From the NCBI GenBank assembly GCA_965153285.1, contig OZ229112.1: a DNA stretch of 64,000 nucleotides; one strand, given 5' to 3'. The position numbers were made by a program, and so were the translations under genes. Below the pieces are notes generated by a model. It was not told the DNA's origin. It worked only from the letters and a program-made list of their open reading frames with translations, and searched no databases. Positions 8,464 to 62,142 of this stretch are shown piece after piece. The DNA comes from Podarcis tiliguerta. Lineage: Eukaryota. Numbering within the stretch: the stretch's first letter is position 1; the number at the start of each line of letters is the position of its first letter.

Positions 8464-11400
8464 GATTTAATCATGTGTCCATGAATTCAGTAACGTAACT
8501 TTACTGGCAGCAAATGCATAGAAAGTTTTAAATGTGGTCACCGTTGCCTAAATAGGCTTGCTGTTGATCTGGATTGATTTGGTTTAGGTCACCTCACTGT
8601 TACTGGCTAAAAGGTCGTAAGCATGATGCCTTGTCTTGAGTTGTTTGTGACATAGGAAGAGCTAATATTTTTGAGTCACAATTCCTTTTACCAGCAGTAA
8701 AGAGCTGATGACTCAGACTGAGACAAAACTACTAGTGGGAGGATGCTGCCCTGAGGTGGTCAACTCTTATAAAATCATAGAATTGTAGAGTTGGAAGGTA
8801 CCATGAGGGTCATCTCATCCAACCCTTTGCAATGCAGGAATTTGTTGTCCAATGTGGGGCTCGAACCCTGAGATTACGGGTCTCATGCTCTACTGAATGA
8901 GTCATCTTTCCATTTTGACAGTTCATCCCAAGTGCTAAATCAGATAAGCAAATAAACAACAACATGCCTGCTTTACTTTGATCCTATACAGGTCTTTGTA
9001 TCCTAATGGATTACCTAATGAATATTCCATTCTAACGACTTTTCGAATGGCTGGAACTACTCTTCAGAAGTATTGGAGCGTTTGGCAGGTTCTAGACTCT
9101 TCTGGAAGAGAGCAAGTTGGATTGAAGTTTAATGGGCAAGCCAAGTCTCTTGAGTACTCATATAAAGGGATTGATGGAAGTCTCCAAACAGCAACGTTTC
9201 TGGATTTGCCGTATCTCTTTGATTCCCAGTGGCATAAGGTTATGGTTGGCATAGAAAGGAGTGCTGTCACTCTTTATGTTGACTGTACTCAGATCCAGAC
9301 TTTAGCCATAAAACCAAGAGGGAAGATCAACGTTGATGGCTTTACCACACTGGGAAAACTGAAAGATAATCCTCAAATTTCAGTTCCGGTAAGTTTTAAA
9401 CATTTACATTTACAAAGAAAGTACTTCCTTTAGCTTTCCTTTGACTTTTTCATGTGGCAGGGTGGGGGGATAGATGTAGGTTGGCATCACAATGTATATT
9501 TTTCAAATGGAGCAGGAAGATATGGCTCTGTGATTTTGATGATATAGGGAAGCATTATCTTTTAACAAGCTTTAAATTAGAAAACCTTATATATCTGGAA
9601 AGTTGCTTGTACTGATCCTTTAAGAACCCTGTAGATACTGGGGAAGGAGGGGGGGCAATTCTGAAAACAATAGATAATTTAATAAACCAGATTATAATGG
9701 ATTGTGGATTTAATGTTCTGCCAAAGAATTAAGTACAAGACTTACCTCAACTCATTACAAAACATAATTAAAAGCTACCAAACCTTTACACATTTGCAGT
9801 GAACGTGACCATCTTTAAACTTTATTATGATTAAGCAGCTTAAAAGAATTAATTGTGTTCTCGGTGACATTAAAAGTTCAATTGATTTATGTGGGGGTAT
9901 CCATTGAAAGTAATATTTATTATATTTGAGCTATAGTCCTGTTAATTTCAAAACCTCAGGATAGAAATGACATTATCTTGGCCTTCTTTCTGCAATGGTC
10001 ACCACAGAACATGACCACACATACAATCTCACAAGATAACATTTCATGGAATAAAATCACTACTTGGTTTTGAAATCCTGTAACTGCAGTAGGGCCAGAG
10101 GTTCGGAATCTTCAGATGTAATCAGACCTCCTTGCTTGTGACATCACAATGCAGAAACAATAATTGCTTTGCATGAGAAAACTGTTACTAAATTATTCTG
10201 ATCGTAGTAATTTTTGAAGTCCTTTCTTCTCTGTTCCTCTGCCAAGAAAGTTGGTATTCAGGAACCTCAGCTGTGACACTGTTTAATGAGCATATTTATT
10301 TTCAGAGAGGAATTGCGATTGGTGTGAAGTATGTAAGTAAGTGTGAAGTACCTACCGTCTATGACAGATAGAAAATAATTTGTACCATGAGGATGTGGAA
10401 ATACTTCTTTTGGATAATGAATCATGCTGCACTTTTATTTTAAAAAATAAGGTGTTTTGTTCCATAGAAAGCAAATAGAGGCATTAAAAGAATGCACACA
10501 TGTAAGGCCTTTTTATTTACTAATTCACCCCTATTTTACTAAATTTGAATTAATGATATTTTCTATCTTGTTTCTAGTACAGTGGTACCTCAGGTTACAT
10601 ACACTTCAGGTTACAGACTCCGCTAACGCAGAAATAGTACCTTGGGTTAAGAACTTTGCTTCAGGTTGAGAACAGAAATCGTGCTCCGGCAGCGTGGCAG
10701 CAGCAGGAGGCCCCATTAGCTAAAGTGGTGCTTCAGGTTAAGAACAGTTTCAGGTTAAGAACGGACCTCCGGAACGAATTAAGTACGTAACCAGAGGTAC
10801 CACTGTAATTGCAGTTGGGTCACATCCTATGTACAACAATGCCTTACTAGGAGCTAGGTGGATTCATCAGGGATCAACTGTGCATGAACATGCAATTGTG
10901 CAATTGTTCTTTCCCCTCTATCTCACCATTGTTGCTGTTTTTAATGGGAAGCAAGAAGAGCAAACAGAGGAAAGACTGCTCAACTTCCTACCTTTGGTCT
11001 GATCACTTCCGTAGGTAGTCAACAAATAACTTGCGGTGGCACTACAAGTGGTAGTAATTTTCTGTTCCCTTGAAGGAGTAAAATAAAATCTTAAAATGGT
11101 CCACTGTGTTCATGTCTGAAAGGAAGTGGAAGTTGGCCCACATTTGAATAAATTGTTTAAGAACAAACAAATATCAATATCAAGTTTAATGTAGATGACT
11201 GTGGTTATGTTGATCAATGAATAGGCAAAGCAATGGTCCTTTATTTCACTAACGTCACGTTAATGAAACAACAGCCAAGCATTTTACTTCACTGGTCTCA
11301 ATTGAATTCCACTTTAGATGCAACAGGGCTAATCGCTGTTTGATACTGTAGCTGAGTCAGAGCTGTTCACCAAGCAGAAGCAATCCGGTAATTTTTAGCT

Positions 11401-44215: not shown

Positions 44216-47200
44216 GGAAAAGGCTTCTTAACTTCAGCTGCTGCTTTCTTGAAATTCTTTGCCTTGCCTGTGCTAGGGGATATTTGATGTTCTGTCAATG
44301 AGCATTCATCATTATGGCATTAGCTTAGTTGGCAGAGTGCTATAGAATTCCAGAGCCATCAGTTCCGAGGAATTAACTCGGAAAGGGTTTATTCTCAAGG
44401 GAAGTCTAATTATAGGTAGTCTTTACCAGTTGCTACTGATGCCTAGAGCTCTTCATTGTAGCTGTGCCTTCCCCAGACCTCATGTGATCNNNNNNNNNNN
44501 NNNNNNNNNNNNNNNNNNNNNNNNNNNNNNNNNNNNNNNNNNNNNNNNNNNNNNNNNNNNNNNNNNNNNNNNNNNNNNNNNNNNNNNNNNNNNNNNNNNN
44601 NNNNNNNNNNNNNNNNNNNNNNNNNNNNNNNNNNNNNNNNNNNNNNNNNNAAGTGTCTACTGGTGGATTATTTGGTGGTCCAAAACACTAATAGCTAGAG
44701 GGACGCGGGTGGCGCTGTGGGTTAAAGCCTCAGTGCCTAGGGTTTGCCGATCGAAAGGTCGGCGGTTCGAATCCCCGCGGCGGGGTGCGCTCCCGCTGTT
44801 CGGTCCCAGCGCCTGCCAACCTAGCAGTTCGAAAGCACCCCTGGGTGCAAGTAGATAAATAGGGACCGCTTACTAGCGGGAAGGTAAACGGCGTTTCCGT
44901 GTGCGGCTCTGGCTCGCCAGAGCAGCGATGTCACACTGGCCACGTGACCCGGAAGTGTCTTCGGACAGCGCTGGCCCTTGGCCTCTTTGAGTGAGATGGG
45001 CGCACAACCCTAGAGTCTGTCAAGACTGGCCCGTACGGGCAGGGGTACCTTTACCTTTTTAACAAAAACCATTCCTGCTGCATTCTAGAACTCAACATCA
45101 GCCTTAGAGTTTTTCCGAGTATCCCTTAGCTGCAGTGCTTATTGCACTGAATGAAAATATGTTCCCGGATAAAATGAAGGACACAATCCCTTTCACTCAC
45201 AGAGAGCACCACACCTCAGGCCATTGGAGTAAATACTGTTCCAAGGCCATCATCACCCCATGCACTTCACCTTGGGGAGTCCAATAGCCTGCTCTTTTCT
45301 AAGCCCTCAGGACATTGGTTACTTCCAGTCCTATTAGTAGTGGTAGTCTGTGCACTAGCGGGTGGAAGAAGAATGTCGCCCCTTAGGTCCTCCATACATT
45401 GTGAATGGTTGAGTGTATTTCTGCAGCGTGCCCAAGGTCATTCACCATGGTAGTGGCATGCATGCCCAGAGGTGGCTTAGTGGGGAGGGTGAAGTTCTAA
45501 TAGACACCTTTGGGGCATCCTGCAGGTGTCTGTCTCCATGACAGGTGAATATAGTGTCCTTTCCCCACCAAGGTCTGTTTCAAACATGCCTTCTCAAGCT
45601 TCCAACTTTCCCTCGGTTGTACAGTTGCTGCCCTGTCCATGTGACCCAAGGATCCATGCATGCTGCTGTGGGGATTTCTGAATCTACTTCCCACTTGGAT
45701 CCAAGAGGAATTCCAGAGTGGGTGCTTGTTGTGTGGTCTGCCAGAACCACCTAGGAAGGGGATACAAACACTCATGCATGGATTAGTGACCACAAGGAAG
45801 CAGTGTTTGATGGTACGGTCGGAATCCATCCTTTAAACACACAAGTAGGTACAGGTACTCACGTTCTCACATGAAGATGGCCAAAAATGCAGATGTTTGA
45901 CGTGAGGATTATACCTTGTCATCAACTCAGATGGCTCCATCTGTCATGGCAATATATTCAGTTATTTATGAAAACGGGTCCAAACTATTAGGGCAGACAG
46001 AAGTGAAACTTGACGGAACACAAGAAGCGGTGTTATACTAAGCTAGGGCAACGTTCCATCTAGTTCATTTTTTTTAATTTTTGCTTTTGTTGTAGAATGA
46101 TATTTTCTATGAGGGGGCATGGAGGTGGTAAGTTGGCACAATTCAAACCCAGTAGCAGGAGAGCCAGATTGGCTCTGCCAGTGTATTTGCACTGCACTGA
46201 GCTGGCTGCTGCCACCTCTGTTCTGGTATACAGCAACAATTCGGAGTGAGGGAGGTCAGGTGATTGGCACTGCTGTAAATGTGTGGGGTGGGTGTAACTA
46301 CATGCAACAGGAAACATACTGGATGTAACTGATAGAATATTAGTTACACAGAGGGTAGATGGTAGCAGTGGCATAGCGGGGTGGTGGCACAGGGGAGGTT
46401 TCCTCAGGCGCAGAATTGTTAGGGGTGCAAAATTTCAGTGTCTGGTGCTGCCTCAATACAGTTGCATGCTTCTTTTGCTGGGCTCCATTGAAAATGGCTT
46501 CTCTGTACAAACCAGGAAGTGACCTCTCCAAACAAAGGAATGACTCTTATTTCCGCAATCTCCTGGGTGACTCAGACACTGAATGTGCATGTGTACTCTG
46601 TCTATTTCTCTCTCTCTATGCGGCCCCGGATACTGGCAACTCATGCTACACCACTGAATGGTAGCCATATCTGGGGGGTGTATTTGTGCTGCATCCTGAA
46701 ATGGGCAAAAACAGGCACAACACACTGTTTGCCTCCTAGCACTGCAGGATGTTGTGTGCAGAGCCGGGAACAGTGCCTGGCCAGGTATTCTGACTTGGAA
46801 GTCTCAGGGTAGCCTACTGTTGCAATGGTACTCATGTCCACATTCTTGCCACATACTTATTCTTTTGGTTATGCACAGCGGTGTTGTGTAAAAGCACTGC
46901 CACTATTACTTTATTCTTAAATTGCAATAATACAAATGTACCTTGTATACATTCTGTAGGAGGGAGTGCTGAATATTTGTATCTAGTTTGCTTCTGTTCT
47001 TCTTTTCCTCTCATCTTTGTGCCTTCATGCTGCTCAGCAGGCATGATGCAATGTATGAAAGCCAAGAGAAATAAGAAGTGCAGATGAAAGAGTATTGTGT
47101 GTGTGTTCAATATAAATATCTCCAAAATCTTTGGTGAATTCAAACACACACCCCACATACTCGGCAGCAGTAGTACCAGATTGTGAAGGGGCAAACTCTG

Positions 47201-53600: not shown

Positions 53601-56600
53601 AGAAGCTCCTGCATTCTCCACGACAATTTTCTCCTTTAACACGAAGGCTGTTTCGGCCACAAGCAAAGCCATCAAAGGCAGCCTTTGCCAACCCAAAGCC
53701 CTCCAGATGATAACTCCTACCAGCCCCTGCTGCTACAGCTGCCATTTCAGTGCTATTGCTATAATTAACATGGATCATCAGCAGTTTAAGCAAGATCATA
53801 TGGTTGCACTTTGTGGTGCTCAAGAAGTTGCTTTTGTAAAGCCTTAAAATAAGGTTGTAAGTGTCCGAAGTATGATGTGTCAAATAGACTGTGGTAGAAC
53901 TCAGCTCCCGAATTGCAAACTTTGTCGTAGGATAAAACATGCTAAAGTATGGGCAGCTAATGAGAACTGTGTTCTGTCAGTCATCTGTGCATGTAAACAT
54001 TGCAATAGCATTGATTTTATTCTTGTTTTATAATTTGCTATATTTGTAGCTTTGAATTTATTGCGTCTGTGTCGGGGCGGAGGAAATCTGTGCCCTGCCG
54101 ACAGTGGCTGCTGCCGAGGTCCTCTGGGATGTTGCACTGCTGTATTTCAGCAGTTTAAGAGGCATTATTGCACTCTGTGATTTAATTTGAGGCCTTCTCA
54201 GCACAACTGCTATTTTTTAAAACTGCCCAACAGGGTATATTATTAGTTTCCACTTCAGATTTACCTTCGCTATGAAGATAAATGTTCCCATCTCCTTTTA
54301 TCAAGTTTAGAATGTCCCTATAGGGAAGGGCTGCAGCTCAGTGGTAGAACACATGTCTTGCATGAAGAAGATTCAATCCCCGGCATTTCCAGTAGGGCTG
54401 GAAAGATTTGAGCAGCTGTCGGTCAGTGTAGACAATGCTAAGCTAGGCGGAATAATGCTCTGACTTGGTATAGGCAGATTTCCCTGTTCTGTGAACATTA
54501 GGTTATGTGAGGCCAATTGTGGTGGATTTGAATGGCATCTGATGATTCAGCAGTTGAAGTGTTGCATTTGCAGCTGTAGTAACGCTACTATCCACCTGCC
54601 CTCTGCCACTCGGCCACACTGCCCCGTCTCTGCTCTCCGGCAAGACAGGACGCCCTGAGTAGCCCAGGCAAGCGGGGGTTACGTCTTTTTCAAACAGGAC
54701 AAAATATACTGGTAGCTGCCACCACCCCTTTAACCTGGGGAACTCCAAGCCACAGCCTCAAGGGGAAAGGCTGCGCCTCAAATTAGTACCGGTTTCCCCC
54801 AACCCTGCAGTTTGTAACTACAGGCAGAAATACATACGGTAGGCGTCACAGAGCGTAAGGCAAGGATTAGCTAATTCCCAGAAAGGCACACAACTAAACA
54901 GTTTCTTTTCTTAAAAGATTTATTTTAAAAAAGAAGAACATAATAACACTTGCGAACTTGCAGGCACATCACTTGAGGGTTACAGAAGTAAAATAAGAAC
55001 ATTGTAAAATATAACTAACTTTCTACTTACAGCACACACTTGTTGGTTAGGATAGAAAAGTCTTTAAGTCCGTAAATCAAAAGAACAGCAATTCTCCATC
55101 ACAATAGGCGGCTAATTAGATGTAGATTCTAGCCGGGCTCAATGCGGATTGCATAGCGCGCTTGACCATTCATTTCTCAAGTCTCTTATCCCCAATACAC
55201 ACGTGGGAACGGACCCCCAAGACCAATCATAACTTTAGATTATTTTCAAATTCACCAATGACTGACTTGCTGATTAATCAATCTAACATTAGACAGCTGG
55301 AGCAATTAAGAACCCAGAGCCAGATCAAGGGGTATCCTCCCTTCCTGAGTGGTATGCAGATGTAGCCACTTAGGAGATAACATCAGTGAGAAAATGCGAA
55401 TAGCGTAGGACCCAGGTGTTAAATCCTTCAGTAAATCAGATCCTCCCCTACCATAACTGTTCCTTTTGGACGCCTGTTAGTCTAGGGGTAAAACAACAGA
55501 ATTCCTTTCCCAGGGTCCTTGTGGCTTGTTGGTTTCCCACAAGGCTTCACTCCCTTGCTTGACCAAGGAATGATTTCTTAAGAATATACTAACTTTACTA
55601 CACCCTCCCCTCTAAGATGGAATTATAGGGTAAAGTCCCATAATTCCCATCTCTCTCTATATACATTGAGGTAGTGGTCCAGGCTGGGGAGACAGCAGCA
55701 CCAAAAAAAAATCATTAGCAGCATCCCCAGTCTGATATTTACACAGTAGTAGGACAATAAACATCAGTAGTTCTCCCAACTGAGAATTCAACCATATTTT
55801 TTCATTGAACCGATTGGTACATCCTAGACAAGGTGTCAGCAACTACATTGTCTTTTCCAGCAATGTGGGTGACCTTAAACTGAAAATCCTGTAAGGCCAT
55901 ACTCCACCTGAGCAATTTCTGATTGGATGCTTTCACTCTTTCTAGCCAACAAAGTGGGGAGTGATCAGTTTGAACTTCAAATATATTACCCCACAAATAA
56001 GGCCTTAATTTGGTCAAAGCCCAGACCAAAGCGAAACACTCCTTTTCAATGGTTGAATAATTTTGTTCCCGGGTTATCAATTTCTTACTCAGATAAACCA
56101 CGGGTCGCCAATTTCCTTCTGTATCTTCTTGGAGCAACACAGCTCCTAATCCGGTCTGACTGGCATCAGTTTGTACCACAAACGGACGTCTCTGATCTGG
56201 GGCTAACATAACTTGAGAACTCACAAGGGCATATTTCAACAGATCAAAAGCTCTTTGGCATTCCTCAGTCCACTCCACTTTGACAGGCAGTGATTTCTTA
56301 CAGAGATTGGTAAGAGGAGTAGCCAATGTGGCAAAATGATTAACAAACCTCCTATAGTAATTTACCAACCCTATAAAAGACTGCACATCTTTTTTCACCA
56401 CAGGGCGAGGCCACTCTTGGATGCATTGCACTTTGGCCTCCAGAGATTTGATGTTTCCCGACCCCACTCTAAATTTCATTGGAATCTCTTCTCCTTGAGC
56501 AAACTGACATTGATATCCCTTACTGGTCAGGTTTGCATCTTGCAATCGGGCCAAGACAGTCTGCACATGTTTAAGGTGCTCTGGCCACGATTCAGAAAAA

Positions 56601-59600
56601 ATCAACTCAACTTCTTCCAATCCCTCCCACTTTCCTCTGAGCATGAGCAAAGAATCCTCTAGGGGTTTTACAAACCCCAACATAAACTCTGAATTTCTTG
56701 GGTAGATTTCAACTAAAGCTCTCAACAGACTTTGAACACAGGGATTGGGCAGAATGGAATTCCTAGCAAACCTGAAACCATTTTTGTTCATAACCTCACC
56801 ATGCTGTTTCCTAGGACTGAAATTCTGTAAAAGACCCACCAAATTCAATTCCTCCTGAACACAACCATTTGCATTGTAAAACCTCTTTTGAAAAACAATA
56901 GACACATCGTCAGGGTCTTTAAAGTCCTTGAGCTGTGGGCAAAGAAGTTCTTTGTTAGACACAACAGGGAAAAACTCAGTCTTACACGAGGGAGTCTCCA
57001 CAGCTTCTCGGCAACCTAGGAGAGAAAACTCAAAACTTTCTTCAGCAGCGGCTTTACTGGGTTGGATTGACCCCCCTCCTTCTGCTTGACTCTCAGCTCT
57101 TAGCTGACAGGGAACGCTTGCACAGTTCACAGTCTGTACTGCTAGGGGGTTTGCTGCAAGCTGCTGGAATGGAACGGCAGATTTCAAAACATTTCCACCC
57201 AAAATAAAGTTTGCACAAACTCGGGGTTCAAGGACTGAACACAAAGGACCCCCCATAGAATTCTTGGAGGTAGACAAATCAACAGTTGCAGGTTGTGGAA
57301 CTAACTTTCCACCACCAGGACTACTCTTCTGGAAGTCAGGTTGGTTCCATTGAGAGAAAACTGAGTCTTTAAATAGAGTCACAGAGTCTATACTTCGAAA
57401 AGAAGGCACAACAATTCGGTGAACCCTGGGGATGACGTCAGACGCTGAGCAGGACCAATTAACACAAGGAGTGGCAATGCGTATCAAGCCAACCCTCCTC
57501 CCGACCAATTTCTTAGGTGTTGCAGTCTCAACAGTCCCAGTAATTTTGGGAGTTATAGCGTCAGGCGCCAAACTTCCACCTTCCCCGTCCGGGACAAAGT
57601 TCTTCCCAGCCCCCTTTTCTCCTTGAAGGGGAGCGTCAACCACCTCCCGACAACCCTGCAGGGAGGGGTCTGTTCTCTGCTCTGCTGCAAACTCCCCCAG
57701 ATCTCCCAGTTCATCAGGAGCATCAAAGTCTTGCATGGGCTCCAAAGTAACAATGGGTAACTCTCCCTCCCCTCCGGGTTTTCCATCCAGCCCTGGGTTT
57801 GACTCCGCCGATTTTCCTGTCTGGGCTGGAGTGGGGGGGGTCACCATGGCAACGGAATTCTCTTTTGACTGCTGCAACAGGTAAACTTGGAACCCGAGAT
57901 CATTCCCAACCAAAACTGGGCTTTTGCAGACTTCTGGATCATGCACAATTACAAGCTGGTGCCCACTATAGCCTTTATACTTCAGAGGAACTATAGCGGT
58001 TGGCTGAAAGATCTCTTCCACCCCATAAGGACTGATTTTCAAGGGTTTTTCCTGCATTTGGCCAGGCAGAATTAAATCCCTTGACACACTGGTCACATCC
58101 GAGCCTGAATCCCGATAAGATTGCACAACAGTTTTATTGATTTCAATAGGGGCAGAGAACTCCAAATTGGCCCAATTCACATGAGGGAACTTTAATTTAC
58201 GCCCCGTTCTTATAGGCCCCACTGTAAGAGCTGGCTCAGGTGTTATAAGATTTTCAACCTTAGCAACATCAGAATCCACCCCGCCCTTCTCTTCCAGGGT
58301 TTGGCTCTCTCCCAATCCAGGAGTCAGCTGTTCCTCCTCCCAATTTTCCTCCGGCCGATGAATCATTCGCACGGCAGGGGTGGAGGTTAAAACAGGAGGT
58401 TTTCGATTACCCTGCTGAGGGCAAGCGGCTTTCACGTGTCCCGGTTTTTTGCATAAGAAACACAGTCCAGAGCTCGGGGACAACTTAACACGTTCCCCCC
58501 CTGTAGCAACAAAATCCTTTGCAGGGGTAGGGAACCCTTTGCTTTGTTCTTTAATGGGAGGGGCAGATCTTCCCATCGAAACAGCCGGCTTGAAGGCGTT
58601 ACTCTGTCCCTTATTAGCCAGGTGCTCGCGGTTCAGCCGAAATGACTCAGCAAGGGCGGTAGCTTCCGCCAAGGACCGTGGCTTTTGGTCTGCAACCAGG
58701 CTGGCAATTTCCGAGGGCAGGGAACGCATTAGTTGTTCAATTAGGAATAACTGTTTAATTCCTTGAACATCCTCCAACACCCCCTCAGCCGTGAGCCACA
58801 GTTCAAAATTCTGAGCCATCTTAGCTGAATGGACGGCAATACTGTCAGTAAGCCCCACTTTCTCCACCTTCCGAAAAGCTTTTCGATACTTGTCGGGGTG
58901 CAAACCATATCTCTGCATGACAAGCCGTTTGAACCCTTCATAGTCATTACGTTCCTTTGAGGGGAGTTGCCCCATGAGTTCTGCCAAGTCCGCACAAACT
59001 AAGGGACGCAGAACAGCCATGTACAAGTCTGGGGTAACCCCCATGTCCTTACAAGTCTCTTCAAAGAGGTTCAAATAACTGAGAACATCAGTGGGTGGCT
59101 GATACTTTGGGAACACTCTCCAATTTAGTGTATTCAAAGTCACTCCAGGAGGGGACTGCTGGCGTTGTCTCTCCCCCCTGACCGGAACATATTCATACCT
59201 CGGTTCCTGGCGGTCTGGCATTTGTCCGGACGCAGGATGTCGCGATCTCCGCCCCTCTGGACGTAGCGGTTCAGCAGCCGCTGCGTATTCACGCTTGGGT
59301 CTCTGAAAAAACTCCTCCTCCTCTGCCTCTGCAACATACCGTCGCACTGGCACGCGCATCTCTTGCGCCCTGACTGGCGAGTAGACTCTGCCCGGGCTAA
59401 ACTGCTGTCTCACCCTCCGGCGAACATCAGGCGGTGGTACCTCTCGCCGGCAGTCTCCCGCAGTCCTCTCAAACACTTGGTCGTCATACGCCATCCGGCT
59501 GACCTCTTGCAGCTGGGTATCCTCTGCCGTCCGGCAGGCCCTCGGTGCCAACACAATGGACTGGCCGATCTTTGGGTGTTTTTCCCGGCAACGGAATCCA

Positions 59601-62142
59601 CCAGCTTCTGGATCTCTCACCCACTCCAGATCGTAGTCCTCTGGGAACTCCATCCCTCCAGGCTCTGTGTAGACAAAAGGCTTCTCTCTAGGACGTGTGG
59701 CGGCCATCCCGGCTCCCACTTCCTCGTGCTGGGTTCCTAGCGGGCCCCTCGCCCCTTCTGCGATTCCGGACTCTCGCTGACCCTTCCGCACTGTGCTTAA
59801 CTGGCTGGCGTTTTCCCGCTCCCCCTCGGACTCAGGGCCGTCTGAAAACCAGGAAGCGGATCTCTCTGGGGAACGCACAGCTTGGGGTTGGTTTACCGGG
59901 AGAGAGTTATCGTCTCCCACCACTCCCCACTGATCCAATGTTTTCATGGTACTTTCCTGAAACCCTCCGGTTTCCTCCATCCTTCCTGACTATCTCTAAC
60001 CAAAATAACAAACCACCTGTAAACCACAAGCGATACGTGCCAAGTTTGCTTTAAAAAATCAAAGTGCCTTTCTGCGAATGTCCCGATCCCACAACGCTGC
60101 CAACATGTAGTAACGCTACTATCCACCTGCCCTCTGCCACTCGGCCACACTGCCCCGTCTCTGCTCTCCGGCAAGACAGGACGCCCTGAGTAGCCCAGGC
60201 AAGCGGGGGTTACGTCTTTTTCAAACAGGACAAAATATACTGGTAGCTGCCACCACCCCTTTAACCTGGGGAACTCCAAGCCACAGCCTCAAGGGGAAAG
60301 GCTGCGCCTCAAATTAGTACCGGTTTCCCCCAACCCTGCAGTTTGTAACTACAGGCAGAAATACATACGGTAGGCGTCACAGAGCGTAAGGCAAGGATTA
60401 GCTAATTCCCAGAAAGGCACACAACTAAACAGTTTCTTTTCTTAAAAGATTTATTTTAAAAAAGAAGAACATAATAACACTTGCGAACTTGCAGGCACAT
60501 CACTTGAGGGTTACAGAAGTAAAATAAGAACATTGTAAAATATAACTAACTTTCTACTTACAGCACACACTTGTTGGTTAGGATAGAAAAGTCTTTAAGT
60601 CCGTAAATCAAAAGAACAGCAATTCTCCATCACAATAGGCGGCTAATTAGATGTAGATTCTAGCCGGGCTCAATGCGGATTGCATAGCGCGCTTGACCAT
60701 TCATTTCTCAAGTCTCTTATCCCCAATACACACGTGGGAACGGACCCCCAAGACCAATCATAACTTTAGATTATTTTCAAATTCACCAATGACTGACTTG
60801 CTGATTAATCAATCTAACATTAGACAGCTGGAGCAATTAAGAACCCAGAGCCAGATCAAGGGGTATCCTCCCTTCCTGAGTGGTATGCAGATGTAGCCAC
60901 TTAGGAGATAACATCAGTGAGAAAATGCGAATAGCGTAGGACCCAGGTGTTAAATCCTTCAGTAAATCAGATCCTCCCCTACCATAACTGTTCCTTTTGG
61001 ACGCCTGTTAGTCTAGGGGTAAAACAACAGAATTCCTTTCCCAGGGTCCTTGTGGCTTGTTGGTTTCCCACAAGGCTTCACTCCCTTGCTTGACCAAGGA
61101 ATGATTTCTTAAGAATATACTAACTTTACTACAGCAGCAAAAGGGGGGAACTACTGGAAACATCATGCCATATCCCAAGCAAAAAATAAATTAAAAAATT
61201 CATCTTTCACAGTGTCAGTGTGTGGCCGATACGTTATCACAGGACATTTCAGATGGGGAATTAAAACAAATTATCATGCAAGGGATTCAGTTTCCTTTCT
61301 GCTCACCGCTCATAACCTTTCTACCTGCATATTTGTGGCAGATGCATGGTAAATGCCCCCCCTTCCATCTCCTTGTCATGGAAATCTTCTGCTCCCAGTT
61401 TTTAGGAAGTATTTAAACCAAGGAATTGCCACATCTAATATAAAACCTAATACAGTGGTACCTCAGGTTACAGACGCTTCAGGTTACAGACGCTTCAGGT
61501 TACAGACTCCGCTAACCCGGAAGTAGTACCTTGGGTTAAGAACTTTGCTTCAGGATGAGAACAGAAATCGCACGGTGGTGGCAGCGGGAGGCCCATTAAC
61601 TAAAGTGGTACCTCAGGTTAAGAACAGTTTCAGGTTAAGAACGGACCTCCAGAACGAATTAAGTTCTTAACCCGAGGTACTACTGTACCAGAAACTTATC
61701 TGAAGTCTATTGCGTCTCATCAGAATTGTAAGAACCAACTCTTTATTTATTCATAAAAAAGCCAATAGGCATCTAGTCCTCGTGGTTGCATGGGATTGAA
61801 AATGTTGCTTTTTATTAAAAGGGTGATGAGTAAAAAAAAAAAAAAAAAAGCAACCACCAAGAAATCCAGATTAATATCTTTGCAGTTGAATACTACAAAT
61901 GATTAGATTAAACTTAGTTTGTAATTTATCTTCATTTCTCCCCCACTTAACAGAGCAACTGGCTCAACTGGCTGCCAGTCTTCGGAGGCCGGAGTTTGGT
62001 GCTCCAGGCCTCCCAGGCCGCCCTGGGCCACCGGGTTCCCCTGGACCACCTGGAGACAATGGCTTCCCAGGGCAGCTTGGGCTTCGAGGACTGCCTGGCC
62101 TTAAGGGTCCTCCTGGAGACATTGGGCTGAAAGGCCCCAAAG
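574..62142 (+). CDS. COL9A1: Collagen type IX alpha-1 chain, multi-exon gene (exons 1-36 present, 3' end outside window)
   Basis: Spliced exons give signal peptide, NC4/TSPN domain ([16 protein letters not shown]...[20 protein letters not shown]), COL3, NC3 ([13 protein letters not shown]), COL2, NC2 ([31 protein letters not shown]) and the start of COL1. Phases are consistent and the sequence matches vertebrate COL9A1 as recalled. Confidence 0.97.
933..1006 (+). CDS. COL9A1: COL9A1 exon 2 (signal peptide [24 protein letters not shown])
   Basis: ttccttacag| ... ACAA|gtaag; 74 nt; hydrophobic signal peptide. Confidence 0.88.
1081..1167. mobile_element. ~90-bp palindromic MITE (further copies near 5835, 20975, 28052, 38500, 49974, 62150)
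   Basis: gcaatcctata...tataggattgc inverted ends with an internal aagt-cccattga-caatggg-actt hairpin recurring across the window. Confidence 0.7.
2884..2961 (+). CDS. COL9A1: COL9A1 exon 3 ([25 protein letters not shown]), GC donor
   Basis: ttgcag|GATTTCCA ... CTACCAG|gcaagt; 78 nt; homologous to human FPVNSN...LCPKIRIGQDDLP. Confidence 0.9.
3294..3426 (+). CDS. COL9A1: COL9A1 exon 4 (NC4)
   Basis: ctttag|GATATGAC ... ACTAG|gtaat; [44 protein letters not shown]. Confidence 0.96.
5593..5614. repeat. (GT)n microsatellite
   Basis: Direct observation. Confidence 0.9.
7784..7824. repeat. (TAC)n(TAA)n microsatellite
   Basis: Direct observation. Confidence 0.9.
8205..8463 (+). mobile_element. 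L2-clade LINE 3' end with (TAT)n tail
   Basis: [13 protein letters not shown]...[17 protein letters not shown]2 C-terminus, 3' UTR gccgcccagagtggctgggg, (tat)n. Confidence 0.8.
8775..8907 (-). mobile_element. Same tRNA(Lys)/CR1-tail SINE
   Basis: Reverse complement similarity to 20444-20586. Confidence 0.72.
8992..9388 (+). CDS. COL9A1: COL9A1 exon 5 (NC4/TSPN core)
   Basis: atacag|GTCTTTG ... GTTCCG|gtaag; [19 protein letters not shown]...[10 protein letters not shown]...NPQISVP; 397 nt. Confidence 0.97.
10580..10805 (+). mobile_element. Tc1/mariner(pogo)-type MITE, family A
   Basis: TIRs CAGTGGTACCTC...GAGGTACCACTG, flanked by TA; 5 copies in the window. Confidence 0.88.
11404..11629 (-). 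mobile_element. MITE family A (inverted copy)
   Basis: Reverse complement of 10580-10805; same TIRs. Confidence 0.88.
15482..15565 (+). CDS. COL9A1: COL9A1 exon 6
   Basis: cctag|TTTGAG ... AGTTCG|gtaag; [28 protein letters not shown]. Confidence 0.95.
16181..16261 (+). CDS. COL9A1: COL9A1 alternative first exon 1* (short isoform signal peptide [27 protein letters not shown])
   Basis: ccATGG start, 27 codons of signal-like peptide ending CLCLSQ, CAA|gtaagt phase-0 donor in intron 6; resembles human exon 1* (...LCLCAAQ). Confidence 0.88.
16297..16317 (+). CDS. COL9A1: COL9A1 exon 7 (21-nt microexon, ISQTVVK)
   Basis: cttttcag|ATAAGCCAGACAGTCGTCAAG|gtaagt; counterpart of human PSQTTDE. Confidence 0.87.
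18343..18408 (+). mobile_element. 3' fragment of the CR1-tail SINE or CR1
   Basis: cctgcattgcagggggttggactagatgaccctcggggtcccttccaactctatgattctatga. Confidence 0.7.
18524..18598 (+). CDS. COL9A1: COL9A1 exon 8 (start of COL3)
   Basis: [25 protein letters not shown]; ag/gt boundaries; 75 nt. Confidence 0.96.
19016..19051 (+). CDS. COL9A1: COL9A1 exon 9
   Basis: [12 protein letters not shown]; 36 nt; ag/gt. Confidence 0.94.
19155..19217 (+). CDS. COL9A1: COL9A1 exon 10
   Basis: [21 protein letters not shown]; 63 nt. Confidence 0.94.
20069..20408. mobile_element. Non-autonomous hAT-type element
   Basis: TIRs CAGGGTCGTCTTT / AAAGACGGCTCTG and perfect 8-bp TSD GAACTATG (20061-20068, 20409-20416). 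Confidence 0.85.
20444..20586 (+). mobile_element. tRNA(Lys)-headed SINE with CR1-like 3' tail
   Basis: gatagctgagtcggaagagcatga...gactct..ctcagggttgtgg..tgagccccac head plus ggactagatga...gtcccttccaactct tail. Confidence 0.75.
21388..21441 (+). CDS. COL9A1: COL9A1 exon 11
   Basis: [18 protein letters not shown]; 54 nt; AAG acceptor. Confidence 0.94.
21766..21801 (+). CDS. COL9A1: COL9A1 exon 12
   Basis: [12 protein letters not shown]; 36 nt. Confidence 0.93.
22505..22660 (-). mobile_element. Old MIR-like/core SINE
   Basis: cacaaccctgtgaggtagg...tgagaga...tcacccagtga...tgaact...taactgcgccacat. Confidence 0.55.
23329..23606. mobile_element. Probable hAT-type non-autonomous element
   Basis: Imperfect TIRs CAGGGGTGGAGGAAGGGG / CCCCTTCCTCCACCACTT; GC-rich island; TSD not evident. 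Confidence 0.55.
25128..25151 (+). CDS. COL9A1: COL9A1 exon 13 (24 nt, contains the COL3 helix imperfection)
   Basis: GKGIPGSL; counterpart of human GRGIPGPP. Confidence 0.9.
25353..25406 (+). CDS. COL9A1: COL9A1 exon 14
   Basis: [18 protein letters not shown]; 54 nt. Confidence 0.94.
26030..26083 (+). CDS. COL9A1: COL9A1 exon 15
   Basis: [18 protein letters not shown]; 54 nt. Confidence 0.94.
27208..27240 (+). CDS. COL9A1: COL9A1 exon 16 (COL3/NC3)
   Basis: [11 protein letters not shown]; 33 nt. Confidence 0.93.
27341..27397 (+). CDS. COL9A1: COL9A1 exon 17 (NC3/COL2)
   Basis: [19 protein letters not shown]; 57 nt. Confidence 0.95.
27683..27736 (+). CDS. COL9A1: COL9A1 exon 18
   Basis: [18 protein letters not shown]; 54 nt. 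Confidence 0.95.
28184..28237 (+). CDS. COL9A1: COL9A1 exon 19
   Basis: [18 protein letters not shown]; 54 nt. Confidence 0.94.
28696..28749 (+). CDS. COL9A1: COL9A1 exon 20
   Basis: [18 protein letters not shown]; 54 nt. Confidence 0.95.
29908..29961 (+). CDS. COL9A1: COL9A1 exon 21
   Basis: [18 protein letters not shown]; 54 nt. Confidence 0.95.
30358..30800 (+). mobile_element. Squamate tRNA-derived SINE interrupted by a MITE
   Basis: tggtagatcacatg...ggttcaaaccctggcatttcca...gactcagta[MITE]taaggaagctgcctac. Confidence 0.7.
30534..30775. mobile_element. Tc1/mariner-type MITE family B, nested in a tRNA-SINE
   Basis: TA|CAGTGGTACCTC...GAGGTACCACTG|TA; interior differs from family A. Confidence 0.85.
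31946..31999 (+). CDS. COL9A1: COL9A1 exon 22
   Basis: [18 protein letters not shown]; 54 nt. Confidence 0.95.
32060..32425 (-). mobile_element. L2-clade LINE ORF2 fragment (frameshifted)
   Basis: [23 protein letters not shown] and [10 protein letters not shown]...FKVLVLTF...YLKEHL...LRSS. Confidence 0.85.
32710..32846 (-). mobile_element. Same tRNA(Lys)/CR1-tail SINE
   Basis: tgtagagttggaagggacc...tgctctactgactgagctatc. Confidence 0.72.
33092..33145 (+). CDS. COL9A1: COL9A1 exon 23
   Basis: [18 protein letters not shown]; 54 nt. Confidence 0.95.
33269..33322 (+). CDS. COL9A1: COL9A1 exon 24 (contains Gly->Ala)
   Basis: [18 protein letters not shown]; 54 nt. Confidence 0.93.
34588..34641 (+). 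CDS. COL9A1: COL9A1 exon 25
   Basis: [18 protein letters not shown]; 54 nt. Confidence 0.95.
35672..35716 (+). CDS. COL9A1: COL9A1 exon 26
   Basis: [15 protein letters not shown]; 45 nt. Confidence 0.94.
35842..35895 (+). CDS. COL9A1: COL9A1 exon 27
   Basis: [18 protein letters not shown]; 54 nt. Confidence 0.94.
36004..36057 (+). CDS. COL9A1: COL9A1 exon 28
   Basis: [18 protein letters not shown]; 54 nt. Confidence 0.94.
38195..38420 (+). mobile_element. MITE family A
   Basis: Same internal sequence (gactccgctaacccagaaatagtacc) and TIRs. Confidence 0.88.
38890..39131 (-). mobile_element. MITE family A (inverted copy)
   Basis: TA|CAGTGGTACCTC...GGTACCACTG|TA. Confidence 0.9.
39974..40225 (-). 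mobile_element. BovB/RTE-like non-autonomous fragment
   Basis: Minus strand ends gactaaacaacaaca; contains ctggagaaggaactggcaagcaactccagtattttgccaagaaaactccatg typical of BovB-related sequence. Confidence 0.72.
41846..42050 (-). mobile_element. CR1 LINE 3' fragment
   Basis: taagagcctgctggatca...ccatctcatccagcatcctgttctcacagtggcca resembles the squamate CR1 3' end in reverse. Confidence 0.65.
42284..42337 (+). CDS. COL9A1: COL9A1 exon 29
   Basis: [18 protein letters not shown]; 54 nt. Confidence 0.94.
43119..43190 (+). CDS. COL9A1: COL9A1 exon 30
   Basis: [24 protein letters not shown]; 72 nt. Confidence 0.95.
43293..43422. mobile_element. Palindromic hAT-like MITE (related copies near 50305-50440 and 33675-33780)
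   Basis: CAGGGGTGGGGAA...CCCTGCCCTG ends; internal gttgttggact/gtccaa inverted arms. Confidence 0.65.
44179..44215. repeat. (CT)n(GT)n microsatellite
   Basis: Direct observation. Confidence 0.9.
44490..44650. other. Assembly gap (161 N)
   Basis: Run of n in intron 30; exon numbering and phase are continuous across it. Confidence 0.99.
44700..45060 (+). mobile_element. Sauria SINE (full length)
   Basis: GGGACGCGGGTGGCGCTGTGG head, B-box GGTTCGAATCC, body gcaagtagataaataggga, ACCTTT tail; CpG-rich, so probably young. Confidence 0.92.
47569..47700 (-). mobile_element. L2 3' terminus with (ATT)n/(TA)n tail
   Basis: Reverse complement of 8370-8463; a short related copy lies at 22400-22460. Confidence 0.72.
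48810..49050. mobile_element. Tc1/mariner-type MITE related to family B
   Basis: TA|CAGCGGTACTTC...GCTTCCACTG|TA; interior similar to the reverse complement of 30534-30775. Confidence 0.75.
49623..49658 (+). CDS. COL9A1: COL9A1 exon 31
   Basis: [12 protein letters not shown]; 36 nt. Confidence 0.94.
49764..49808 (+). CDS. COL9A1: COL9A1 exon 32
   Basis: [15 protein letters not shown]; 45 nt. Confidence 0.94.
50734..50766 (+). CDS. COL9A1: COL9A1 exon 33
   Basis: [11 protein letters not shown]; 33 nt. Confidence 0.93.
52809..52955 (+). CDS. COL9A1: COL9A1 exon 34
   Basis: [49 protein letters not shown]; 147 nt. Confidence 0.96.
53132..53186 (+). CDS. COL9A1: COL9A1 exon 35 (NC2)
   Basis: [18 protein letters not shown](E); 55 nt, phase 1. 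Confidence 0.95.
54322..54490 (+). mobile_element. Squamate tRNA-derived SINE
   Basis: gctcagtggtagaacac A-box, ttcaatcccc B-box; similar to 30358-30800. Confidence 0.7.
54575..55602 (-). repeat. 3' LTR
   Basis: TG...CA ends; PPT adjacent; minus-strand AATAAA at 54919-54924. Confidence 0.96.
55603..55613 (-). other. Polypurine tract
   Basis: Minus strand AGAGGGGAGGG abutting the 3' LTR. Confidence 0.85.
55802..59980 (-). CDS. Retrotransposon polyprotein, 1392 aa: Gag (SCAN-like CA, CCHC knuckle), aspartic protease, degenerate protease repeat, integrase remnant, truncated RT, RNase H
   Basis: [14 protein letters not shown] knuckle (58421-58462); YRDSGSD protease motif (DSG 58103-58111); RT thumb/connection ([23 protein letters not shown]); RNase H (QTDAS, IEKE, QTDH, VADTLSR); no YxDD and no integrase HHCC/DDE seen. 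Confidence 0.93.
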   Translation of the reverse strand: MEETGGFQESTMKTLDQWGVVGDDNSLPVNQPQAVRSPERSASWFSDGPESEGERENASQLSTVRKGQRESGIAEGARGPLGTQHEEVGAGMAATRPREKPFVYTEPGGMEFPEDYDLEWVRDPEAGGFRCREKHPKIGQSIVLAPRACRTAEDTQLQEVSRMAYDDQVFERTAGDCRREVPPPDVRRRVRQQFSPGRVYSPVRAQEMRVPVRRYVAEAEEEEFFQRPKREYAAAAEPLRPEGRRSRHPASGQMPDRQEPRYEYVPVRGERQRQQSPPGVTLNTLNWRVFPKYQPPTDVLSYLNLFEETCKDMGVTPDLYMAVLRPLVCADLAELMGQLPSKERNDYEGFKRLVMQRYGLHPDKYRKAFRKVEKVGLTDSIAVHSAKMAQNFELWLTAEGVLEDVQGIKQLFLIEQLMRSLPSEIASLVADQKPRSLAEATALAESFRLNREHLANKGQSNAFKPAVSMGRSAPPIKEQSKGFPTPAKDFVATGGERVKLSPSSGLCFLCKKPGHVKAACPQQGNRKPPVLTSTPAVRMIHRPEENWEEEQLTPGLGESQTLEEKGGVDSDVAKVENLITPEPALTVGPIRTGRKLKFPHVNWANLEFSAPIEINKTVVQSYRDSGSDVTSVSRDLILPGQMQEKPLKISPYGVEEIFQPTAIVPLKYKGYSGHQLVIVHDPEVCKSPVLVGNDLGFQVYLLQQSKENSVAMVTPPTPAQTGKSAESNPGLDGKPGGEGELPIVTLEPMQDFDAPDELGDLGEFAAEQRTDPSLQGCREVVDAPLQGEKGAGKNFVPDGEGGSLAPDAITPKITGTVETATPKKLVGRRVGLIRIATPCVNWSCSASDVIPRVHRIVVPSFRSIDSVTLFKDSVFSQWNQPDFQKSSPGGGKLVPQPATVDLSTSKNSMGGPLCSVLEPRVCANFILGGNVLKSAVPFQQLAANPLAVQTVNCASVPCQLRAESQAEGGGSIQPSKAAAEESFEFSLLGCREAVETPSCKTEFFPVVSNKELLCPQLKDFKDPDDVSIVFQKRFYNANGCVQEELNLVGLLQNFSPRKQHGEVMNKNGFRFARNSILPNPCVQSLLRALVEIYPRNSEFMLGFVKPLEDSLLMLRGKWEGLEEVELIFSESWPEHLKHVQTVLARLQDANLTSKGYQCQFAQGEEIPMKFRVGSGNIKSLEAKVQCIQEWPRPVVKKDVQSFIGLVNYYRRFVNHFATLATPLTNLCKKSLPVKVEWTEECQRAFDLLKYALVSSQVMLAPDQRRPFVVQTDASQTGLGAVLLQEDTEGNWRPVVYLSKKLITREQNYSTIEKECFALVWALTKLRPYLWGNIFEVQTDHSPLCWLERVKASNQKLLRWSMALQDFQFKVTHIAGKDNVVADTLSRMYQSVQ
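60086..60105 (-). other. Primer binding site (tRNA-Leu-like, imperfect)
   Basis: Minus strand directly after the 5' LTR reads TGTTGGCAGCGTTGTGGGAT; the complement of a vertebrate tRNA-Leu 3' end is TGGTGGCAGCGGTGGGAT as recalled. Confidence 0.65.
60106..61133 (-). repeat. 5' LTR
   Basis: Direct repeat of 54575-55602 at offset 5531; PBS adjacent on its inner side. Confidence 0.96.
61453..61685 (+). mobile_element. MITE family A
   Basis: TA-flanked; carries an extra copy of the 16-bp subterminal unit caggttacagacgctt. Confidence 0.88.
61954..62142 (+). CDS. COL9A1: COL9A1 exon 36 (NC2/COL1)
   Basis: (E)[26 protein letters not shown]...GLKGPK(G); 189 nt; cag|...AAAG|gtaag. Confidence 0.96.

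Follow-up and report, generated by a model that had tools for sequence, protein, structure and literature searches.

A recent Gmr1-like retrotransposon insertion in the wall lizard Podarcis tiliguerta with one reading frame running through a dead protease and an integrase relic

Non-autonomous long terminal repeat (LTR) retrotransposons usually lose all coding capacity or keep only Gag and protease. In wheat, RLG_Sabrina_SA and RLG_WHAM are whole families without reverse transcriptase (RT) and integrase in which the GAG-protease open reading frame (ORF) is intact (PMC9744471). They co-evolve with an autonomous partner, the helper RLG_Wilma, and template switching has been proposed for the exchanges between them (PMC9744471). 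We group BARE2/BARE1 with these families as a comparable plant system. In the mouse, the IAP subtype IΔ1 is described, in the part of PMC6466679 that cites Saito et al. 2008, as producing a gag-pol fusion protein that acts in cis and as the most active subtype of its family. In the Gmr1-like elements, integrase precedes RT (protease-integrase-RT-RNase H, PR-INT-RT-RH) and the capsid is SCAN-like; these elements are reported to be depleted in reptiles (bioRxiv 10.1101/2025.03.03.638093). Here we describe an element that can be placed among the known non-autonomous or semi-autonomous LTR elements. It lies in a 64,000-nucleotide stretch of contig OZ229112.1 from Podarcis tiliguerta (assembly GCA_965153285.1), referred to below as the window. 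Its one long ORF contains no polymerase active site and no functional integrase. The best overall explanation, which we consider probable, is that this is a recent insertion of a semi-autonomous Gmr1-like Ty3/gypsy element in a lacertid-type lizard, dependent on a helper for its mobility and with its reading frame under selection.

The element resembles the Gmr1-like elements of vertebrates in its SCAN-like capsid, its single gag-pol frame and the position of integrase before RT, seen here as collinear relics. It differs from them in having no polymerase active site or functional integrase and in carrying an extra, dead protease. Whereas the Gmr1-like group is reported to be scarce in reptiles, this derivative moved very recently. 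IAP IΔ1 is a betaretrovirus-like endogenous retrovirus in which a single 1.9-kb deletion takes part of gag and pol; the element described here, in contrast, has kept Gag and protease intact but lost RT and integrase, and its old pol mosaic is common to several lineages. Sabrina_SA and WHAM are plant elements whose ORF ends after the protease, whereas the present frame runs for another 680 codons to RNase H. No published description of this element family was found in the literature searched. Relative to these systems, several features are new: the setting among vertebrate Gmr1-like elements, which are said to be scarce in reptiles; a long frame that crosses a dead protease and the remnant of an integrase before it reaches an intact RNase H; and the persistence of the layout across diverged lineages together with visible traffic of segments with helpers.

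The boundaries of the element are sharply defined. Two direct repeats of 1028 bp each, at 54575–55602 and 60106–61133, match with 0 mismatches and have TG...CA ends. The coding strand of the element is the minus strand, on which all of its features below are given; in this orientation the first repeat is the 3' LTR and the second the 5' LTR, with an AATAAA at LTR position 679. The same 5-mer, GCAGC, occurs on both flanks (54570–54574 and 61134–61138) as a target-site duplication (TSD) that has no strand of its own. A polypurine tract (PPT), AGAGGGGAGGG, read from the sequence, adjoins the 3' LTR at 55603–55613. An earlier reading of this DNA, made from the letters alone (the sequence-only reading), had listed identical LTRs, the GCAGC duplication and the PPT, and all three are borne out. 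Because the 1028-bp LTRs are identical and the TSD is intact, the element is a very recent insertion, mobilised in spite of its defects. Zero differences in 2 × 1028 bp place the insertion at less than approximately 1.5 million years ago (95% upper bound), under an assumed rate of 1e-9 substitutions per site per year that was not measured here.

At the 5' end, TGTTGGCAGCGTTGTGGGATCGGGAC comes directly after the LTR on the minus strand, and a stretch resembling a primer-binding site (PBS), TGGCAGCGTTGTGGGATCGGGAC, occupies 60080–60102, its TGG beginning 4 nt past the 5' LTR. The PBS claimed in the sequence-only reading therefore stands as a candidate site, for which neither a primer tRNA nor any tRNA gene in the window was found. 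The stretch may resemble the complement of the 3' end of a tRNA-Leu. The LTR contains no complement to the PBS region, which leaves self-priming unsupported. No second copy, solo LTR or helper fragment was found in the rest of the window (57 kb), and neither an Rfam scan nor a tandem-repeat scan of the element found anything. The window is interrupted only once, by 161 N at 44490–44650, either an assembly gap or a masked stretch; the element itself is free of N runs.

Between the LTRs lies a single gag-pol-derived ORF of 1392 amino acids (55802–59980, stop codon included). It has no internal stop, in agreement with the 4.2-kb ORF without stop or frameshift noted before. No other frame of the internal region exceeds 125 codons, and no hidden RT or integrase was seen in six frames. 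The N-terminal region of Gag (aa 1–290; 59111–59980) is fast-evolving, with 56% identity to a sibling element of P. muralis. It is followed by the capsid's SCAN-like C-terminal domain (aa 363–452; 58625–58894), which matches Pfam SCAN with E 6e-9, above the curated cut-off, and by a CCHC zinc knuckle (aa 507–520; 58421–58462) that was read directly, its Pfam score being below the family cut-off. The first copy of the protease (aa 597–712; 57845–58192) is 84–86% identical to the P. muralis sibling and to P0004, a P. muralis protein of the PR-INT-RT-RH type. It has D-S-G at aa 624–626 (58103–58111) and the helix motif LVGNDLG. A linker with the first integrase residues (EFAAEQ...GEKGA; aa 713–791; 57608–57844) matches P0004 aa 163–251.

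The C-terminal part of the ORF consists of the RT thumb (aa 1127–1236; 56273–56602), 81% identical to P0004, and RNase H (aa 1237–1366; 55883–56272), 89–96% identical to relatives. Pfam RT_RNaseH_2 and RT_RNaseH both match aa 1237–1366 (E 1e-35 to 1e-39; 5e-39 for RT_RNaseH). RNase H keeps all four acidic positions (TDAS, EKE, TDH and ADTLS), the fourth at aa 1379–1385 (55826–55846). Judged from these matches and motifs, the protease is apparently active and the thumb and RNase H are apparently intact, as the sequence-only reading had concluded for Gag, the zinc knuckle, the protease DSG and the RNase H acidic residues. Pfam returned no RVT_1, rve or integrase zinc-finger match in the ORF at E≤1; the active sites of RT and integrase, which the same reading had reported missing, are gone.

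The region between these two parts had been regarded as anonymous diverged sequence. This description does not hold: BLASTP and hhalign comparisons show that aa 792–1126 (335 residues) are a collinear, degenerate second copy of protease and integrase. The second protease, which is catalytically dead (pre-PR* and PR*; aa 792–945; 57146–57607), aligns with lacertid proteases in BLASTP (E 1e-7 to 1e-16, 28–36% identity) and in hhalign (E 8e-6). Its active site reads SFRSIDSV in place of SYRDSGSD, with loss of the catalytic Asp, and the helix motif is retained as ILGGNVL. The second linker and integrase relic (INT*; aa 946–1126; 56603–57145) were defined through three collinear matches to P0004. 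In BLASTP, ORF residues 800–1026 align with P0004 residues 26–275 (28% identity, E 7e-12), 1022–1093 with 339–410 (E 0.1), and 1103–1123 with 507–527 (E 0.034). When a profile of eight middle regions was compared with a PR-INT profile using hhalign, the same three matches were obtained with E 8e-6, 0.027 and 0.002. Pfam gave no match with the middle region alone, nor with the genuine protease alone, and an ESM Atlas search with the middle region returned only chance-level bacterial clusters.

In the integrase relic the HHCC finger is deleted, the first Asp of the DDE triad is changed to Asn at the place where the intact core reads IDLVGPLPKTRSGKQ, and nothing else of the core survives. The 12 residues kept at its C-terminus are a remnant of LSMLRKEWEGSEE, which lies downstream of the catalytic core. 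The statement that the element has no HHCC/DDE integrase is therefore right as to function, there being no rve match, but a degenerate remnant of the enzyme fills the middle. The relic ends at an in-frame deletion junction, WEGLEE/VELI/FSESW (56585–56611), located by comparison with P0004. Missing at this junction is the equivalent of P0004 aa 528–872, which takes in the C-terminal end of integrase together with the fingers and the YLDD-bearing palm of RT. Homology resumes directly after YLDD-LAV of P0004, consistent with the earlier observation that RT begins at the position of its catalytic motif. Among the other Gmr1-like proteins retrieved, none had a BLASTP match (E<1e-3) to the lacertid protease. 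Because the dead protease resembles only lacertid proteases (30–36% identity), this copy arose inside that lacertid clade.

In a search of 5.8 billion proteins, the ORF falls among proteins of wall lizards (Podarcis). More distant relatives are Gmr1-like elements of turtles, fish and invertebrates, in which SCAN is followed by integrase, RT and RNase H. The P. muralis protein P0001 (1352 aa) repeats the layout of the ORF from its first domain to its last, with 67% identity over the full length, and three further P. muralis proteins (P0002, P0003 and P0111) also carry the dead region. P. muralis has at least four paralogous models, 88–99% identical among themselves. In P. lilfordi the layout is split over two gene models on one chromosome: P0123 spans the capsid to the dead protease, and P0124, from the integrase relic to RNase H, is 85% identical to ORF aa 1034–1392. 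An ORF from Logan, P0122, spans the last part of the dead protease through to the thumb with 59% identity and still displays the duplicated linker (VGDLAAFEVKQRF...). Across these P. muralis and P. lilfordi proteins and Logan ORFs, the shared layout is found at 59–85% identity. When the middle region was searched against 1.84 billion representative proteins, only six matched; five of these are Podarcis proteins or similar Logan ORFs, and the sixth, P0107, a yeast cell-wall protein, was discarded as spurious.

The same defective structure is thus present in independent copies, at the protein level and in other species. Because the layout occurs in P. muralis and P. lilfordi proteins and in Logan ORFs, the deletion is neither private to this copy nor an artefact of assembly, and on the protein comparisons the element appears to belong to a semi-autonomous family rather than to be a one-off deletion. 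The sequence-only reading had proposed a non-autonomous family and had named a full rve or RVT_1 match, or a deletion unique to this copy, as what would speak against it; no such match was obtained, and the relatives share the junctions. Membership in the Gmr1-like group, to which that reading pointed, follows from the capsid type, the domain order and the nearest relatives. The element combines TG..CA LTRs, TSD and PPT with a SCAN capsid and the PR-INT-RT-RH order, preserved as collinear relics (PR, INT*, thumb, RH). What it lacks compared with an autonomous member are the RT fingers, palm and YxDD and the HHCC finger and DDE core of integrase.

The closest full relatives of the ORF, P0004 and P0007, carry Integrase_H2C2 and rve before RVT_1. 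In P0004, Integrase_H2C2 lies at aa 280–336, rve at 358–450, RVT_1 at 760–919 and RNase H at 984–1113. P0004 matches the ORF only at aa 539–791 (72% identity) and aa 1127–1366 (86%); P0004 aa 251–874 are replaced in the element. We consider P0004 a candidate helper, given the protease and thumb-RNase H segments that the two have in common.

Identities along the protein are discordant between relatives. P0001 and P0004 are 98% identical in the protease, 93% in RNase H and 86% in the thumb. P0123 of P. lilfordi is 79–84% identical to the element in the capsid and the dead protease but only 63% in the protease, which finds its closest match (76%) in another family of proteases, here called the second protease family and represented by P0005 and P0006. 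In P. muralis, the subfamily of P0002, P0003 and P0111 has its own diverged thumb start (LIFSDLWPNRLKHVQSVLAHLQDPNL), then an RT palm with YLDD, and then the thumb and RNase H. This palm covers RVT_1 profile positions 59–205 and is almost identical to that of P0004, and the RT fingers are absent. By this arrangement the subfamily appears to be a further recombinant between helper and parasite. From the discordance of the identities along the protein we infer template switching between co-packaged RNAs, and repeated switching between parasite and helper RNAs would be the simplest reading. The duplicated protease probably originated when a helper-type Gag-protease-integrase start was joined upstream of an older, decaying protease.

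Two sets of related sequences were noted in the course of these comparisons. One consists of the Logan ORF P0108 and ten variants (~35 contigs, ~1–2.5 kb), which encode 111-aa ORFs that start in the linker of the second protease family, enter the start of the dead protease and then stop. These seem to be decayed or differently organised relatives. The other consists of models annotated as 'centromere protein U', P0005 (P. raffonei), P0006 (P. muralis) and P0123 (P. lilfordi), which are largely made up of the Gag and protease of the element's group plus the beginning of its dead protease. P0005 and P0006, which share 88% identity across ~800 aa, have an N-terminus of ~120–180 aa that is not derived from a transposable element (TE). 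At E≤0.01, Pfam showed no CENP-U domain. The explanation is either a chimeric annotation or an exon of TE origin that two species have kept open.

The reading frame of the element remains open through the degenerate middle, in which the sequence-only reading had seen a sign of selection. In its two other frames the middle region contains 16 and 24 stops, and shuffled sequences average 18.7. When the middle region was diverged neutrally in simulation until it reached 70% identity, the value observed against the P. muralis siblings, a mean of 5 stops arose and the probability of no stop was 0.0075; the observed number is 0. For the whole ORF at 67% identity, ~26 stops are expected under neutrality. 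Each large deletion that shaped the relic preserves the frame. Integrase copy 1 has lost its zinc-finger part in both the element's lineage and P. muralis, through two different in-frame deletions: at 57608–57694, the former keeps P0004 aa 228–251 (EFAAEQ...) and the latter aa 334–357 (QKVG...VLEN).

Conservation of the middle region was compared with that of the other domains across three lineages, represented by the element, P0001 and P. lilfordi (P0123/P0124). In the order element-P0001, element-P. lilfordi and P0001-P. lilfordi, the identities are 75/79/76% for the capsid, 78/78/69% for the nucleocapsid, 80/84/86% for the dead protease, 70/78/83% for the integrase relic, 79/76/77% for the thumb and 91/96/90% for RNase H. 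The Gag N-terminus and the linkers are much lower, at 36–56%. The dead region, at 70–86%, is therefore as conserved as Gag, at 69–79%. Since the helpers have no middle region, recombination with them cannot explain its conservation. Together with the low probability of an open middle under neutrality, these comparisons make it reasonably likely that the whole frame is selected for translatability.

Several points temper the case for selection on the frame. Constraint was judged from amino-acid identities. The comparison sequences are gene models and ORF calls, which tend to favour open frames and may pass over defects by treating them as introns; a 25-aa gap common to all four P. muralis models might be such a predicted intron. 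In P. lilfordi the layout is divided between two models, and P0122 and P0108 (111 aa) from Logan are short ORFs; many copies therefore do decay. Recombination with helpers could also conserve the protease and RNase H without selection on the parasite copies.

One rival explanation is that only Gag and protease matter, and that the open frame downstream is incidental, a product of youth, refreshment by helpers and bias in ORF calling. Homogenisation is real, as the P. muralis siblings match P0004 at 86–98% identity in protease, thumb and RNase H, and the division of the P. lilfordi copy and the truncation of P0108 and P0122 fit this view. It also gains from the fact that the same simulation, applied to this copy alone (approximately half of the path), gives a chance of only ~0.08 for a middle without stops. 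The middle region, however, has no counterpart in the helpers from which it could be refreshed, and it is open both in this copy and in four P. muralis models at 67–73% identity, for which the neutral probability is the 0.0075 given above. A middle as conserved as the capsid and nucleocapsid, with its large deletions all in frame, is likewise difficult to reconcile with an incidental frame. We regard this explanation as unlikely, though it deserves attention.

We give similar, limited credence to a role of the frame at the level of RNA. Retroelement RNAs with early stops have long 3' untranslated regions (UTRs), and an open frame may avoid a long 3' UTR and nonsense-mediated decay; alternatively, the sequence may hold cis-acting signals for packaging, dimerisation or internal priming. 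Such a role would account for a dead protease and an integrase relic that have no catalytic motif and no confident fold or family signal, yet are kept in frame and in sequence. On the other hand, no known RNA family matches the element, and constraint on the RNA alone does not explain the very high conservation of RNase H with its catalytic residues intact.

A third explanation, put forward in the sequence-only reading and in our view doubtful, is that the polyprotein has acquired a new activity on the helper, either as an RNase H subunit or scaffold for the helper RT, or as a regulator or dominant-negative factor that favours the parasite RNA. RNase H is the best-conserved part of the protein (89–96%) and retains its four acidic residues, and the dead protease keeps ILGGNVL and is 80–86% conserved between lineages, as such an activity might require. 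Structure prediction was of no help: AlphaFold2 gave a pLDDT of 25.6 for the protease-linker-dead protease segment with a 5-row alignment, in which the genuine protease was equally uninformative. A predicted complex of the P0004 RT-RNase H (aa 690–1115) with the thumb-RNase H of the element scored 0.00, a result obtained without controls that counts neither for nor against binding. In a related form, to which we assign only a slightly better chance, the dead protease, integrase relic and thumb-RNase H would be a selected module that docks onto or complements the helper Pol in particles. The module would then act, for instance, as RNase H subunit within a dimeric RT, or as a pseudo-protease partner that times processing, and parasite and helper would form a co-evolved two-component retrotransposon system in a vertebrate.

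The remaining two explanations are very improbable. The idea that the assembly is at fault, or that an autonomous copy suffered a private deletion after insertion, is refuted by the relatives, in which the junctions and the dead region recur in two other Podarcis species and in Logan ORFs, and the element contains no N run. Domestication as a host gene, which the long open ORF and the layout conserved across species might suggest, is contradicted by the identical LTRs, TSD and PPT of a recent insertion and by the paralogous P. muralis models; there is no single orthologous locus devoid of LTRs.

Returning to a helper-dependent element whose frame is under selection, we propose the following mechanism. 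The element encodes its own Gag, an apparently active protease, and an apparently intact RT thumb and RNase H. As it has no polymerase active site and neither zinc finger nor DDE core, it is itself unable to synthesise DNA or to integrate, and reverse transcription and integration would be carried out by the Pol of an autonomous relative, with a helper of the P0004 type supplying RT and integrase in trans. The pol mosaic would have formed by template switching between co-packaged parasite and helper RNAs, and parts may still be exchanged in this way. Among lineages that seed new copies, selection would act to preserve translation through the entire frame. Most probably this is because a Gag-containing polyprotein made by the element itself aids the packaging and copying of the element's RNA in cis, as has been reported for IAP IΔ1 and in keeping with the semi-autonomous GAG-protease families of wheat; a possible further reason is use of the C-terminal RNase H. 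With translation in cis or use of RNase H, stops and frameshifts between Gag and RNase H would not be tolerated.

Elsewhere in the window, an ORF fragment on the plus strand at 8978–9433 encodes a Laminin-G/thrombospondin-N-like domain (Pfam Laminin_G_2, E 8e-5). The fragment probably represents a collagen-type host-gene exon; it lies on the strand opposite to the element and ~45 kb away from it.

The locus bears on the biology of the family in several ways. In this vertebrate lineage, a frame of 1392 codons has stayed open across two dead enzyme domains and, as this copy inserted recently, the lineage may still be active. It offers a natural system for asking why translation of a defective polyprotein is favoured, whether through cis-preference, RNA stability or protein function, and for studying recombination between parasite and helper retrotransposons. 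It also flags an annotation problem, in that the Podarcis 'centromere protein U' models contain the Gag and protease of the element. Finally, it bears on whether Gmr1-like elements, the source of the SCAN domain, remain mobile in lacertid lizards.

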